Positions 29,837 to 41,800 of a stretch of DNA of 64,000 bases are shown piece by piece. Where the stretch lies: the NCBI GenBank assembly GCA_033442325.1, contig JAWQFM010000014.1:1202901-1266900 (forward strand), written 5' to 3'. Numbering within the stretch: position 1 is the first letter of the stretch; every line of letters starts with the position of its first letter. Position numbers and translations under genes: made by a program. Source of the stretch: Salpingoeca rosetta (lineage: Eukaryota; Protista; Choanoflagellata). The notes under the pieces are model-generated. The model had not been told where the DNA came from, did no database searches, and saw nothing but the letters and a program-made list of their open reading frames with translations.

Positions 29837-32800
29837 ATGTCGCCGCAACACCCGCAGCCGCAGCGCCCTCGCTGGCGGGCGCCATCACAGGTTCTTGTGG
29901 TGGCCCTCGCCTGCACCCTCGCCCTGGCCCAGAGGTATGTGGATGCTGCATCTGGGGGGGGGGGGTTCTGAGTGTGATCGTGATGGTGGTGAACGTGGTT
30001 GTGTGGGTTGTGGCACTGCTAATGGCGTAAATGAGATAGGTAAGGTTCAGTGAAAGGGATCAAAACGCGCGACTTCCCCCCCCCCCCCAATATGCGTCTC
30101 TTTGGCATCATGCGACACACTCCACCACCGTGATTCCCTGAATGGTTCTTCCCTCGACGTTGCTGCAATCCACACTTCTCTTGTGCCACACACACACGAT
30201 CTCATTGCTGATGATGTCTGCTTTGGTGTTTGTGTTTGACATGAATATGTGTGCGTGTGTCTGCGGTTGTATCCTTTTCTGACTCGTGTGCGTTTTGTGC
30301 ATGTGCAGTGCCACAGCCGCTTCTTCTTTGGACTCCTTTGCCCGCATCCGGCGTGATGTAAGTGTCGGTGTTTTACACACTTGGCGTTTCGACCGCTGTT
30401 GCCGTGTTGATGGTGTCCTGTCACAAGCCATGTCATGGCGACCAGCGCGTCTGTGGCAAACCAGTTCCGAGCATACTCTCGTTTCGCTCACGCGTTTTGA
30501 TCACACACACACACACACGCGCGCGCGCGCGCGCACACACACACACACACACCTGCACGCACCCCTCCTGCACACACGCAGGTCCCGTCTGCTCCCCCGA
30601 GGAACCCGACGACCACGCCCACACCCGGTGGCGCGTTTGCCGTTTCGTGGGAAGCGCCCGACCCCGGCACGACCAACGGCGCCATCACCGGTTACGTGAT
30701 CCGCATCCGCCCTACGGCTCCGCAGCCCCCGACGTGGGCCTACGGCAACGCCACCCTCGACGCCACGGACGTGGAGGTGTCCTCGAGCACCTTCTCCTAC
30801 ACCCTGGCCAACGAGCTCTCGTTCCCGTTCTCTGGCTACGATGTCGGCGTCGCCGTCAAGAACGCCGAGGGCTTTGGCCCCTTTGCCATGCTCTCCGTCG
30901 ACCCGCCAAACAGCATCCCGTCCGGCCAGCCGCGCTCCGTGACCACGTCCCTCCCACCTGTGGACCCGATGACCTACCCGCCAGACGCGGACGAGGTCAT
31001 CGTTCAGTGGACCGTGCCTGCAGGCATCTGGTTCCGCAACGCGCCCGCCATTGGCTTTGACCTCGTGGCCACGCCCGTGCCGGGCAGCACCACGGACGAA
31101 GTGGTGACCGTCCGCTTCCCCAAGCAGTGGCAGGACGGTGACTCGCCCGACGAGCAGCTCACGGCCTCCATCACGGGCCTCACCCCAAACACGGAGTACG
31201 TCGTGCTCGTGTACACGATTGGCCTGGACGGTGACCGCAGCACCGCTTCCTTCATGACCACGGAGAAGACGCGTCCGCACCTGCCCACGGTTGCACCGGC
31301 GGGCCTCAGCGTGGACGACACCTCTGCCACGACCTTCAACCTCTCCTGGGACGCCATGAGTGCCAGCACACCGGGCAGCAACGGCGACATTGTTGGCTAT
31401 CGCATCTACCACGTGCCCTCCGCCGACCGCGGCTGCACTCACATGACGTGCCCGCCTCCCTCGCCCTGCCAGGATGACCCGCGCTGTGAGTTTGGCGTGT
31501 GCACGTACACCAACAAGCCCGACAACTCCACATGCGACGACGGTAACGACGAAACCGTGTATGACCACTGCGAGGCTGGCGCATGCATTGGCGAGATTAT
31601 CAACCAGCACATCACCCAGCAGCCCGCTCACCGCCACATCAACATGAACGTGAGTTGTGTGTGTTTGCGTGTAAGCTTGCGTGTGTGCGCGCATGCGTGT
31701 GTACGTGTGTGTTCGTGGGTGCATTGCATGTTGTGATTCCTTCGGACTGATTCTGCGTTCCCTTACTTTGCTGCTCCTTCTCTGGTTTACAGACGCGCAG
31801 CCATGGCGGAGGATACATGCCTCGACTCGGCGAGTTCTGGTGAGGATGAATGTAATCGTTGAAGAGAAGGTGGAGACAATGTGTTTGGTTTCCTGAATGT
31901 CGTTTTTGCGTTCACGTCCACACACACTCACACTCACACTCACACGCACGCACGCACGCACGCACGCACGCACACACACGTATGCAGGTACCCCTACTGG
32001 AGTGGCTCCAGCGTGTACAGATATGCAGAGGATGGCACGTACAAGACAGGCTTTGGCACCAGCTCAAGCAACATGATGCAACTCTGGGGCGAGCCCGACT
32101 CCCTGTACTACTACACTGCCAATTGGAATAGCCAATACTGCCGCAAGATTGGTCCCTTTCCCAGCACGAGCGTGCAGTGGACGTATTATCCTCAGCCACA
32201 GACCACTGTGGGTGGCATCGCAACCGACAGCAATTACGCGTACTGTATTCAGAACGGCCGATCCACTGTGCACGTGCTCAACAAGGACACCGGCTCGCTG
32301 GTCCGCACGTTTGACCTAACTGGTGGCAGCATCAGCAGCCTGTACGGTGCCTTTGCTGTTGTCAACGACAAAATTTACTACGGCACGGGGCAGTACTTCT
32401 ACCGCCACAACCTGGAGGATGGCACCTTTGATGGCTTCAGGTGTGCATATGAAGCTGTGTGTGCTGCGTGCGTGTGTGCGTGTGAGTGTGTGACAACGGG
32501 TGCATGATGGCGTACTTGTGTGCGTCTACGGCTATTGATTACGTTTTCGTGCATCGCTGGATCCAAATGCAGGTTCCAAACTGCCCGCACCATTTACAAC
32601 ATGGCTTTTACGGGACAGGACCTTTGCATCAGCCAGAACGACAACGATGTCTTCTGCTATCAGGTGGGCGTGTGTGCATTCGTCTGTGTGTGCGCGCATC
32701 ATAGCTTGTATTAGTACCGCTGGCTGGTCGCTGTTTTCCTTGAACCGGCTCATTCACACGGCTGAATCCACACCGCCGCTTCAGGTCATCTCCCACAACA

Positions 32801-38800: not shown

Positions 38801-41800
38801 CCGCGCATCCGACCACGGCTTCTCCGGCTCCACCTTCCACTCACGCTGCGACAACAAGGGCCAGACGGTCGTCGTTGTCCGCTCGACAGAGGGCAGCCCA
38901 CAGGGTCCACGTGTGTTTGGCGCCTTTGCTCCCAACAGCTGGCGCTCTGACACGTCCACGTATCTGCGTGCCGACGACGCCTTCCTCTTCCGCTTTGTCA
39001 ACAACGGCCAGTTTGAGCGCACAGAGCTGCTCAACTACCCGCAGTACGCGCAGTACACACGCCCAAACTACTGCCCAGAATTCGGTGAGGTGTTTGCCTG
39101 TGCGTGCGTGAGTGCGTGTTGGTGTACGCTGTTGATTTGGTCTGGAGTTCGTCGCTGACTTGTGCGAGCGCGCACATACACTCACACACACACACTCACA
39201 CACACTCACACACACACACTCTCTCTCTCACACACACACACACACACACTCACTCACACACATTGACGCACATGTAGGCAACTCTGATTTCCGCATGTCA
39301 ACCGACTGTCGGTCTGGATACACCAGCACGAGTGCCTACACGTGAGTCAAACCCATGCATGTGTGCTTTGGACTCGAATTCCTCTGTGTTCAATGAAACT
39401 GCAACCAATGTTGTCATTTCCTCATACTCATCGCCATCCATGCTGTTGCGTGTATCCGTGCTATTGCTGAGCGCAGTGTGCACCAGAGCAGCAGCACGTA
39501 CAACAACGAGTGGTTGACTGGCTCCTACAACAGCTGGCAAGTGGATGACGTCGAGGTCTTCTACCGCGTGGACGTTGCAGCCGATCCGTGCTCCGATGTG
39601 GTTCGTACAGCGAAGAGCCCAGCATGCTTATGATGCTTGCCTTGCATGTGTGTGTTGGGTTGGTAAACTGCCAAAACACTTAGTATCACGAATCCCTTCG
39701 TGTCAATCTCATCCTCATGCGCATCATCATGGTCCAAACATTGCAGACATGTGATCCACCAATGGATCAGTGCAAGCAGCCCGGTCGCTGTGTCAGTGGC
39801 GAGTGCGTCTATGACGATGCGCCAGATGGCACCGACTGCGACGATGGTGAGCTTGAATGCTTGTGTGCGTGTGTGTGTGTATGTGTGTGTGTGTGTGCGT
39901 ATCTATGCTTTTGTGTGCATCGAGTCACCATTGCACGTCTCCTCGTTCCTCACCAACAAACACACAAACGTGCCACTCCCCTTCGAACAACGCACCCTTT
40001 GCAGGCGACGATGCGACGGTGTTTGACTCGTGCCAGGACGCCGTCTGCGTTGGCCGCCATCCCGTCATCACGGAGGACAACCAGCACACGTTCACTGGCC
40101 TCGACCCGTACACCACCTACGCCTTCCGTGTGGCTGCCCGCACCGTCCGCGGTCAGGGCCCGGGCCTCTGACGCCGTCCGCGCTCGCACTCTCTCCGGCA
40201 CCCCAACAGGTTGGCGCTTGTGTGTGTGTGTGTGTGTGTGTGTGTGTGTGTGTGTGTGTGNNNNNNNNNNNNNNNNNNNNNNNNNNNNNNNNNNNNNNNN
40301 NNNNNNNNNNNNNNNNNNNNNNNNNNNNNNNNNNNNNNNNNNNNNNNNNNNNNNNNNNNNGCATGCTTGCTTGTACTCAGCTTCACTCACACAGGGCCCT
40401 CACTCGCTTACAACCCCCCTCCCCTTTCTTTCCCTCCTCAACCTTTAGGTCCACCCCAGGATGTGGTGGCGCGAGCGGCAGCAACGACAATTCTGCACAT
40501 CACGTGGAAGCAGCCGCTGTTTGGCGAGCGCCACGGCACCATCTCATCGTACAAGCTGTGGGTGCAGCGCCTGAACAGCATGCGCCAGCCAGCGGGCACA
40601 CCCTGGACCATTGTCACGGGCAAAGACCTCACCAACTTCAACCTCACAGATCTCGACGCGTACACATACTATCAGGTTTGTGTGCGTGTGTATGACCATG
40701 TTGTTGTTGGCATCGTTTGCTCAACTTGCTCTCTGTCAATATTGACCGGGTTTGTACCACCACACTCACTCTCACACACACACTCACGTACACACGCACA
40801 CATACACACGCACAACCACAACAACAGGTCAAGGTGGCTGCCTCCACCATTGATGGCCTGGGTCCGTACAGCGATGCGTCGATTGCTCGAACAGCAGAGG
40901 GAACACCACCCGTTGCACCCACGAACGTGCAGGTGGACAGCACAACAACCGAGACTGTCACGCTCAGCTGGGACCCAATCAGCCCACTCGAGGCTGATGG
41001 CATCCTCATTGGCTACACCATTTCTGTGCGTCAGGGACCAAGGACCGACTGCACACGCCACCCTGCCAGTGTTGACGTTGTCTACATCGACACACCGCGT
41101 GTCGAGACATACACGGTGGTGGAGCTGCAGGACACAGCCGTGTATCCATATCAATTCCAGGTTGCAGCCCGCACTGCTGCTGGCGAGGGCGTGTACTCTA
41201 CACCAGCGCTGCACATGACGAGCGGTGGTTCGCAGGTGTGCGCTGGCCCGTCCGTGTGGACATCAGACGTCACCACCACATCTGCCAACGTGTGGGTGAA
41301 ACCTCCTTTGTCAGTTGAGCTGAACGGCAACACCATTGCCACCATCAACGTGACCGTCACGGCCGTCGAGGACTCCAACCGCCACCCCATCACCGGCGCA
41401 ACACCGGCATGGCTCGTGTTCTCTGCTGCTGATGGCTTCAACGCCAGCCAGGCGCTGTCTGGGCTCGACCCGTACACGGTGTACAGCGTGGAGGCCGTGG
41501 TCATCACCACGACTGGCGTGTCTTCGCCGACGTCTGCTCCCTACACGTTCCGCACCGCCGAAGCGACGCCAGGTGCTGTGGGCTCCCTCATTGCACAAGA
41601 GGTTGGCGACGTGGTGAAGGTGCTGTGGACGCCGCCATCGCCGGCAAACGGAGCGCTCCAGTATCGCATCACATTCACGCCCGCCGTTGATGGCACGAGT
41701 GATTTCACCACGTCCTACGCCAACTTCAGCCTCGACGTCCTCTCGGTTCGTTGTGTGTGCGTATGTGTGTGTATTTGCGTATGTGTGTGTATTTGCGCAT

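Follow-up and report, generated by a model that had tools for sequence, protein, structure and literature searches.

The window analysed here is a stretch of 64,000 nucleotides from the choanoflagellate Salpingoeca rosetta (G000:C14:1202901-1266900 of a 55.4-Mb genome), with a G+C content of 52–60%, ten runs of N and short introns rich in CA/TG microsatellites. Its plus strand carries, at about 29837-45111, a gene for a type I membrane protein with around 12 fibronectin type III (FN3) domains, TNFR-like and furin-like cysteine (Cys) repeats, one transmembrane (TM) helix and a tail with an NPxY motif. Two of the FN3 domains are interrupted after strand C and continue at C'/E once an inserted cassette containing beta-propellers and a TLDc domain ends. 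This nesting had been put forward in an earlier note made from the letters alone, and our analysis confirmed it. It is a new domain architecture, composed of known folds and one undescribed Cys module. The gene model was read exon by exon, and the whole-protein work was done on three related proteins (P0001, P0002 and P0093) and on L002, a metagenomic locus with a single open reading frame (ORF). Hidden Markov models (HMMs) of our own for FN3 (71 positions), the propeller (about 200 amino acids), the Cys module (56 amino acids) and TLDc were built from P0001 and P0002 and run against all plus-strand ORFs of the window.

Both cassettes follow one order, which is FN3 profile positions 3 to 28 or 30, a Cys module, propeller(s), TLDc, a second Cys module and FN3 positions 39 or 41 to 71; cassette 1 has two propellers and cassette 2 has one. 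Upstream of the first Cys module the FN3 HMM matched 30642-30887, 30996-31223 and 31338-31424, the last match being limited to profile 3-28 of 71. Where each domain resumes, the Pfam fn3 profile covered C-half positions only (46-82 of 84, E 1e-11, for FN3-3), and strands A to G of the family (PF00041) were covered by the HMM only when both halves were combined. Both mappings agree with the claim that the cassettes interrupt two FN3 domains. The peptides by which the note had recognized the halves lie where it put them (GYRIYHV at 31395-31415, SSYTLDD from 34988, VEYSIYY at 36290-36310 and HTFTGLD from 40085), and the three propeller starts and the motif common to the Cys modules are present in the window as well. 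In the nine units examined, from S. rosetta, Microstomoeca roanoka and a metagenome, the N-half ended at profile 27-37 and the C-half started at 38-42.

The data support that the cassettes and the FN3 halves belong to the same coding sequence, because they share exons and because a complete M. roanoka transcript ORF has the same layout. One open frame runs through the exon 30582-31649 (donor at 31649/31650) and covers FN3-1, FN3-2, the N-half of FN3-3, the Cys module and then a linker; in the exon from 34640 to about 35250, the terminal part of TLDc 1 is followed by a Cys module, the C-half of FN3-3 and the start of FN3-4. Since FN3 halves and Cys modules occupy common exons, the cassette is most unlikely to be a separate nested transcript, a possibility that the note had raised against itself. 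Cassette 2 comprises 14 exons, and all 13 introns are GT-AG with agreeing phases. As regards confirmation by cDNA, which the note had also considered, the M. roanoka transcript ORF is the nearest equivalent, although it comes from another species.

When 1.84 billion representatives were scanned in full by HMMER, the TLDc exon yielded 4067 matches, 13 of which were below 1e-30. The closest database protein was P0001 (XP_004988782, "hypothetical protein PTSG_13098, partial"), an S. rosetta paralog from a scaffold of GCA_000188695.1 (locus L001) that has two split FN3 units and both cassettes. In the XP_004988782 model (P0001 at about 1010-1020; L001:9101-9204) the protein jumps from the middle of a C-side Cys module to the last strands of an FN3 C-half; the skipped DNA is present, and a false intron prediction is the probable cause of the jump. 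The M. roanoka protein P0002 (EukProt) is a 4500-amino-acid "type:complete" transcript ORF with a signal peptide, about 20 FN3 domains, TNFR_c6, a TM helix and an NPxY tail. It contains three split FN3 units with two, two and one propeller, whose N-halves stop at profile 27-37 and whose C-halves start at 39-42. The protein P0042, encoded on the metagenome contig of L002, reads propeller-propeller-TLDc-Cys-FN3(39-71)-FN3 in a single 2.5-kb ORF. Short environmental fragments keep the same domain order, and several of them (P0158, P0161) begin with THTH intron translations, a choanoflagellate-like trait. Among the 150 best TLDc relatives, no protein of at most 1200 amino acids held a whole split unit. 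Finally, P0093 (S. rosetta PTSG_09376) has one split unit (Cys, propeller, propeller, TLDc, Cys), identical in layout to those of the window. However, it ends in GPS and 7tm_2, whereas the window protein has one TM helix, an NPxY tail and no GPS; the combination of GAIN/GPS plus seven TM helices (7TM) that defines adhesion-type G protein-coupled receptors (GPCRs) is found in P0093 and not in the window gene. Cupidon, an S. rosetta adhesion GPCR with EGF, ConA and TSP1 domains (PTSG_03655), was considered and falls outside this family.

The identity of the TLDc domain was established in two ways. Pfam TLD (PF07534) matched the window exon 38520-39155 with an E value of 2.2e-16 and 60.7 bits against a cut-off of 24.5, and it also matched two stretches of P0001 (145 bits) and three of P0002 (223.7 bits). 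In addition, the segment L002:533-1975 (linker, propeller, TLDc and Cys module; 481 amino acids) was modelled with AlphaFold from a 21-row alignment. The predicted local distance difference test score (pLDDT) averaged 83; 224 residues reached at least 90, and values in the TLDc part were 87–98. This part superposed on NCOA7-AS (7obp; Z 21.7, root-mean-square deviation (rmsd) 2.0 Å, 161/165 residues) and on zebrafish OXR2 (4acj; Z 21.2), and also on mEAK7 and Skywalker. The note had named failure of HMM or structure matching as grounds against its assignment; a match was obtained by HMM for the window and by structure for the L002 model, and both identify the domain as a genuine TLDc.

The same PF07534 domain occurs in OXR1, NCOA7, TLDC2, TBC1D24, mEAK7 and yeast Oxr1p/Rtc5p, with a fold agreement of Z 20–22 and rmsd 2.0–2.2 Å (NCOA7, 4acj). 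The characterised proteins are found in the cytosol, and their binding partner is the V-ATPase V1 sector (PMC8608904, PMC9263379, PMC11066047). In contrast, the TLDc of the window is embedded in an FN3 loop with Cys modules on both sides and has four additional conserved Cys. These four, conserved in the TLDc domains studied here, align with non-Cys positions or gaps in NCOA7; their pairing in disulfides is putative.

As the note had stated, the TLDc of the window lies between a signal peptide (29837-29935) and a TM helix (44272-44343), and both P0002 and P0093 agree with this arrangement. Hydrophobic signal-like N-termini are also present in P0001 and P0002. Because the signal peptide is upstream and the single TM helix downstream, the cassettes are read from the sequence as facing the cell exterior, both in the window protein and in P0002. 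Independent support comes from P0093, whose TLDc cassette is N-terminal to GPS/7TM, because this region of an adhesion GPCR is extracellular by definition. The location is not the cytosolic one, with access to V1 subunits, by which a V-ATPase regulator of the TLDc type is recognized, and binding to V1 is excluded because this predicted topology puts the domain outside the cytosol. Most of the 60 closest TLDc relatives had no signal-like N-terminus in a crude hydrophobicity test, and many carried cytosolic partner domains such as Dynamin_N or BTB/KCTD; a signal-like N-terminus was seen, as an exception, in the choanoflagellate members and in three very large proteins (P0055, P0060 and P0073). 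No paper describing an extracellular TLDc or this cassette was found in a literature coverage that was incomplete. The literature combining TLDc and choanoflagellates gave only Monosiga in an alignment, the main text of the eLife 2025 catalogue of choanoflagellate GPCRs does not mention TLD, and the top-ranked papers pairing TLDc with "secreted" deal, by their titles and abstracts, with other subjects.

The Cys modules that bracket each cassette have eight Cys in the pattern C-x4-C-x4/5-C-x5-C-x4-C-x10-C-x11-C-x4-C. Modelled alone, the module gave two beta-hairpins (pLDDT 89.5). It had no significant match in Pfam, in PDB sequences or with Foldseek, the best Pfam entry being DUF7107 (E 0.07). 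Among 23 weak Foldseek rows obtained with a 55-amino-acid module, 17 were of the ADAM family (E 1.6–9, TM-score 0.44–0.51 over 46 columns, 20–27% identity), and the first half of the module resembles EGF (factor X EGF1, E 0.03). The motif ...DGT.C... is shared with the disintegrin/Cys-rich region of ADAMs and snake-venom metalloproteinases; however, none of the rows that link it to these proteins is significant (E above 1), and Pfam gave no match either. We treat it as an undescribed 8-Cys module.

The sequence of the window copy is interrupted by a gap and disturbed by a frameshift. The gap is a run of 811 N inside cassette 1. On its left flank a propeller-B exon reaches about profile 34 and then reads YTWKGYY, and on its right flank a TLDc exon reads YHTSSYCPTFG (profile 135-151); strand and order of both flanks match cassette 2 and the paralog locus L001. 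Between homologous anchors the distance is 1584 nucleotides in L001 and 1125 in the window and, for this reason, the N run is probably about 460 nucleotides too short, the true gap length being near 1.27 kb. It would hide the rest of propeller B (about 160 amino acids) and profile 1-134 of TLDc 1, around 295 residues in all. The matching L001 interval contains two propeller exons and two TLDc exons, and the linker and propeller B are complete in P0001/L001. For cassette 1, then, the note gave the right order of propeller(s) and TLDc, but these residues are absent from the window sequence. The frameshift is a defect of this copy alone. At 40148-40177 the window reads GGGCCCGGGCC where L001 and four other genomic copies read GGGCCCGGCC. 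Because of one additional G, at about 40162, the frame ends after GQGPGL within the second FN3 C-half; the next frame holds the natural continuation ASDAVRARTLSGTPTG, which matches P0001. The site is only 100 nucleotides before a contig end (gap 40261-40360), which makes a sequencing error likely.

The window copy is one of five close copies in the S. rosetta genome, the others being located at C30:688 kb, C31:772 kb, C35:742 kb and C34:34 kb, with TLDc exons 85–92% identical. A subtelomeric family was considered on account of three copies at 35 kb or less from a scaffold end, but is not supported, because the window copy is 450 kb and another copy 120 kb away. Compared with P0001/L001, the FN3 domains of the window are 88–100% identical with a synonymous divergence (dS) of about 0.2, and TLDc 2 is 92% identical (dS about 0.4). 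The C-side Cys module of cassette 2 is 88% identical (17 codons, dS not calculable) and the N-side Cys modules 73–80%. The propellers are more distant, with 81% identity and dS 1.2 for propeller A and 66% and dS 1.9 for that of cassette 2. The ratio of nonsynonymous to synonymous divergence (dN/dS) was 0.1–0.2 for propeller A, the cassette 2 propeller, TLDc 2 and FN3-5, and 0.29 for the pooled FN3 codons. The measured domains are under purifying selection, and positive selection on the propellers was rejected (dN/dS 0.12–0.18). The family is a mosaic, in which either gene conversion has kept the scaffold uniform or the propellers have been exchanged or are old. Along window 30582-40700, a stretch 82% identical to L001 (34631-34946) adjoins another that is 99% identical (34977-35100), and this mosaic divergence suggests gene conversion or module exchange.

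These data bear on the alternative that survives best, namely that the window copy is a pseudogene or is mis-assembled, so that the architecture is real in the paralogs but the protein is not made from this locus. The extra G is unique to this copy, being absent from four genomic copies and L001; there are gaps at 33576-34386 and 40261-40360, and the patchy resemblance to the paralog hints at gene conversion. However, the frameshift lies where read quality is low, at 100 nucleotides from a contig end, all other exons in 29837-45108 are open, splice sites, TM helix and tail are conserved, and dN/dS against the paralog is 0.1–0.2. We consider this alternative unlikely.

A second alternative is that the FN3 halves are vestiges that no longer fold together, the cassette lying between two degenerate linkers. 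The N-halves alone score weakly (E 0.002–0.004), and closure of the domain is deduced from profile coverage and not from a joined fold. Nevertheless, the halves keep the core signature of FN3 (W in strand B, Y in strand C and L..L.P.T.Y.V.V.A in E-F), their profile coverage is complementary in all nine units (1-28/37 and 39-71), and they are 96–100% identical between paralogs. Degenerate halves are thus improbable, and two interrupted FN3 domains are the preferred reading.

The third alternative concerns the propellers. In the L002 model the propeller of about 200 amino acids forms around 20 strands, that is, five blades. It superposed best on the five-bladed bacterial glutaminyl cyclase 3mbr (Z 18.6, rmsd 2.9 Å, 202/236 residues) and also matched 3nol, 3nok and 2iwa, with six-bladed NHL domains close behind. 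By sequence, its repeats are PQQ_2/YncE/BamB-like: Pfam PQQ_2 gave 29.3, 41.7 and 35.8 bits on P0001, P0002 and P0042 (cut-off 27.6), and no Pfam match was obtained for the window propeller exon on its own. The beta-propellers proposed in the note are therefore upheld as to fold and refined to a small five-bladed type. Glutaminyl cyclases (3mbr, 3nol, 2iwa) have the same blade number and size (Z 17–18.6, about 200/236 residues), but identity is 11–13% and there is no Glu_cyclase_2 HMM match, so the likeness is one of fold. Glu_cyclase_2 (PF05096) was not matched in the Pfam scans of the window, P0001/P0002 and relatives; ESM Atlas neighbours carry it, with a recognition value below threshold. 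We read the cassette propeller, as modelled, as a small five-bladed propeller and not as a cyclase.

It could still be argued that the propeller-TLDc head is an extracellular enzyme, with a glutaminyl-cyclase-like propeller as catalyst and TLDc as an accessory, given that plant- and bacterial-type glutaminyl cyclases are its best structural matches and that the ESM Atlas neighbours point weakly the same way. Against it stand the low identity to cyclases (11–16% by Foldseek, 11–13% in the VIA alignments), the failure of Glu_cyclase_2 where sequence finds only PQQ_2/YncE/BamB-type repeats, the nearly equal scores of six-bladed NHL propellers and a divergence between paralogs that is quick for an enzyme; we regard an enzymatic head as very doubtful. 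Finally, one could suppose that within introns of an FN3 gene the cassette represents an independent nested gene or a prediction artefact. Choanoflagellate genes are intron-rich and the annotated P0001 model includes one or more wrong introns, but at both ends of cassette 1 uninterrupted exons hold FN3 halves together with Cys modules, P0002 is a complete ORF derived from a transcript, and L002 runs from propeller to FN3 in one ORF; this alternative can practically be dismissed.

Taken as a whole, these results make it quite likely that the gene belongs to a family of surface proteins in which an FN3 rod carries cassettes in C-C' loops and a head acts as recognition unit. The window gene is one copy of a small S. 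rosetta family of large type I surface proteins. In two FN3 domains of the rod, the C-C' loop would bear an independently folded cassette, with a disintegrin-like 8-Cys module leading out of the loop and a homologous second module leading back, and one or two five-bladed propellers together with TLDc would form the head. The two Cys modules may lie side by side as a stalk and bring the ends of the insert together, which would allow strands A-B-C and C'-E-F-G to close into one FN3 sandwich, the head projecting sideways from the rod. The cassette would face the cell exterior or, once taken up, the luminal side of a vacuole of the endocytic or food type. As TLDc could not touch the cytosolic V1 sector there, it would have to do something else; most likely the propeller-TLDc head recognizes a ligand on a surface or in the matrix, candidates being bacterial prey, glycans and other cells. 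Specificity would come from the propellers, and TLDc would offer a conserved surface to partners. The sequences point to the propellers rather than TLDc as the part that sets specificity, if any part does, because propellers are divergent between paralogs (66–81% identity) and TLDc is conserved (92%). The interpretation in the earlier note, which included a ligand-binding role for TLDc, is thus supported in part. For its output the window protein might use the NPxY/tyrosine tail, and the related adhesion GPCR its GAIN/7TM part.

Several points weigh against this reading. The closing of the two halves into one FN3 fold is deduced from complementary profile coverage, and the side-arm geometry proposed in the earlier note has the same basis; its placement of the insertion in the C-C' loop does hold, since the breaks fall after strand C (...GY.V.Y) and before C'/E. 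The structural model is of a metagenomic homologue 37–45% identical to the window protein, not of the window's own protein. The reading frame through 33576-34386 is undefined, leaving an unread gap inside cassette 1, and with this gap and a 1-nucleotide frameshift the window copy could represent either a mis-sequenced gene or a pseudogene of recent origin. In addition, the high divergence of the propellers shows old or swapped modules rather than positive selection, because high dS values (1.2–1.9) go together with low dN/dS.

The pair of propeller and TLDc was also found outside this family. The three giant proteins P0055, P0060 and P0073 (5.4–6.5 thousand amino acids) have a signal peptide, lipobox-like N-termini and no TM helix, carry two to eight copies of the same propeller of about 200 amino acids plus two TLDc, and are encoded by single 16–19 kb ORFs on contigs of 30–190 kb. 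They share propeller and TLDc with the window protein but have no FN3 host and no match to the Cys-module HMM. These giants are probably bacterial surface lipoproteins and, if so, the propeller-TLDc pair would be an extracytoplasmic unit in two domains of life. A wider proposal, which we advance only tentatively, is that propeller-TLDc is an extracytoplasmic recognition module which choanoflagellate receptors have in common with giant surface lipoproteins of bacteria, perhaps through transfer between the two, and in which TLDc has a second activity unrelated to the V-ATPase and the side arms on FN3 rods and on the adhesion GPCR sense bacteria or partner cells. Were this true, the second activity of TLDc could be, for example, binding of a ligand derived from prey or from a cell surface.

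Nested domains are known from other proteins. In the integrin beta subunit the PSI, hybrid and beta-I domains are nested, and in complement C3 the TED lies inside CUB and ANA inside MG6. In these proteins, likewise, a folded domain sits in a loop of a beta-sandwich and the host is built from two distant segments. However, the host is here a canonical FN3 and the insert a cassette of four or five domains (540–750 amino acids) between two homologous Cys modules, and the split FN3 has no sequence relation to integrins or C3. As a natural instance of a multi-domain insert within a canonical FN3, with a repeated stalk module at both ends, it is unusually clear, and this nesting is relevant to the engineering of FN3 scaffolds and to receptor complexity in the closest relatives of animals. 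The adhesion GPCR member links the cassette to a signalling output. To our knowledge, every TLDc protein examined to date works in the cytosol, with the V-ATPase as its target, and a conserved, obligatorily extracellular TLDc, as predicted here, shows another use of the fold. S. rosetta is a tractable system for finding this use because it can be edited by CRISPR (bioRxiv 10.64898/2026.06.27.734982).

The features of the window gene are collected in Table 1. A Ser/Thr stretch lies between the furin-like repeats and the TM helix, and the last exon (44932-45108) contains the motifs YLTV and LYAEP. Propeller A was matched in three pieces (HMM positions 1-16, 17-176 and 170-202). The HMM matches themselves spanned 31793-32666 for propeller A, 33043-33281 for the start of propeller B, 34382-34798 for the TLDc 1 tail, 36469-36990 for the N-side Cys module of cassette 2, 38652-39573 for TLDc 2 and 40061-40162 for the FN3-6 C-half.

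Table 1. Features of the split-FN3 gene in the window, with positions counted from the first letter of the window.
Feature	Position	Strand	Basis
Signal-peptide exon (MSPQHPQPQRPRWRAPSQVLVVALACTLALAQ), followed by a GT donor	29837..29935	+	Sequence read
Short exon	about 30307-30358	+	Exon reading
FN3-1, FN3-2 and FN3-3 N-half (strands A-B-C), single exon	30582..31424	+	Pfam fn3 E 1.8e-16; own FN3 HMM
Cassette 1 N-side Cys module, 8 Cys; exon shared with FN3-3 N-half	31431..31595	+	Cys HMM 1.9e-20; alignment
Cassette 1 propeller A; exons about 31792-31840, 31983-32440, 32569-32661	31792..32666	+	Propeller HMM; consistent splice phases
Linker exon 32784-32858 and first propeller B exons 33031-33088, 33228-33261, 33551-33575	32784..33575	+	Propeller HMM 1-16, 17-34
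Assembly gap (N run)	33576..34386	.	Paralog comparison for hidden content
TLDc 1 C-terminal part; exons 34387-34421 and from 34640	34387..34798	+	TLDc HMM 135-151 and 134-202, E 7.6e-22
Cassette 1 C-side Cys module (34805-34966) and FN3-3 C-half (34979-35077)	34805..35077	+	Cys HMM 2.3e-16; FN3 HMM 39-71
FN3-4 and FN3-5, both intact, between the cassettes	35159..35977	+	Pfam; own FN3 HMM
FN3-6 N-half; preceding exon ends ...NKTAIK at about 36078	36248..36328	+	FN3 HMM 3-30; junctions
Cassette 2 N-side Cys module, three exons	36456..36990	+	Cys HMM 1-23, 24-41; GT-AG in phase
Cassette 2 single five-bladed propeller (as modelled), six exons	37045..38492	+	Propeller HMM pieces 1-201; junctions
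TLDc 2; exons 38650-39086, about 39278-39340, about 39476-39596	38650..39573	+	Pfam TLD; TLDc HMM 1-201; junctions
Cassette 2 C-side Cys module, three exons	39580..40055	+	Cys HMM 7-49; junctions
FN3-6 C-half, with frameshift at about 40162	40061..40215	+	FN3 HMM 41-69; Pfam fn3 46-76 of 84
Six more FN3 domains	40442..42908	+	Own FN3 HMM
TNFR-like (42936-43160), then furin-like Cys repeats	42936..44190	+	tblastn to C-terminal part of P0002 (Pfam TNFR_c6)
Single TM helix LIYVAVAVGAVIALALIMIGVALL, then RRK	44272..44343	+	Aligns with TM helix of M. roanoka P0002
Cytoplasmic tail; NPAYMM (NPxY) at 44458-44475	44344..45111	+	P0002 keeps NPVYMM

Some features of the neighbouring sequence were also recorded. 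Just downstream of the gene, two identical ORFs of 66 amino acids (45458-45655 and 46873-47070) flank the gap 46406-46505 and are either a tandem duplication or an assembly artefact. Upstream, at 20518-28457, there is a separate plus-strand gene in which HYR/cadherin-like repeats form a very long block without introns and which has a cytoplasmic tail of its own. Finally, an intron-free ORF of 459 amino acids at 51548-52924, with a hydrophobic N-terminus and about nine tandem repeats of around 45 amino acids (…GLIYGIPYEASAVLIIDP…), looks like a repeat or propeller-type protein.

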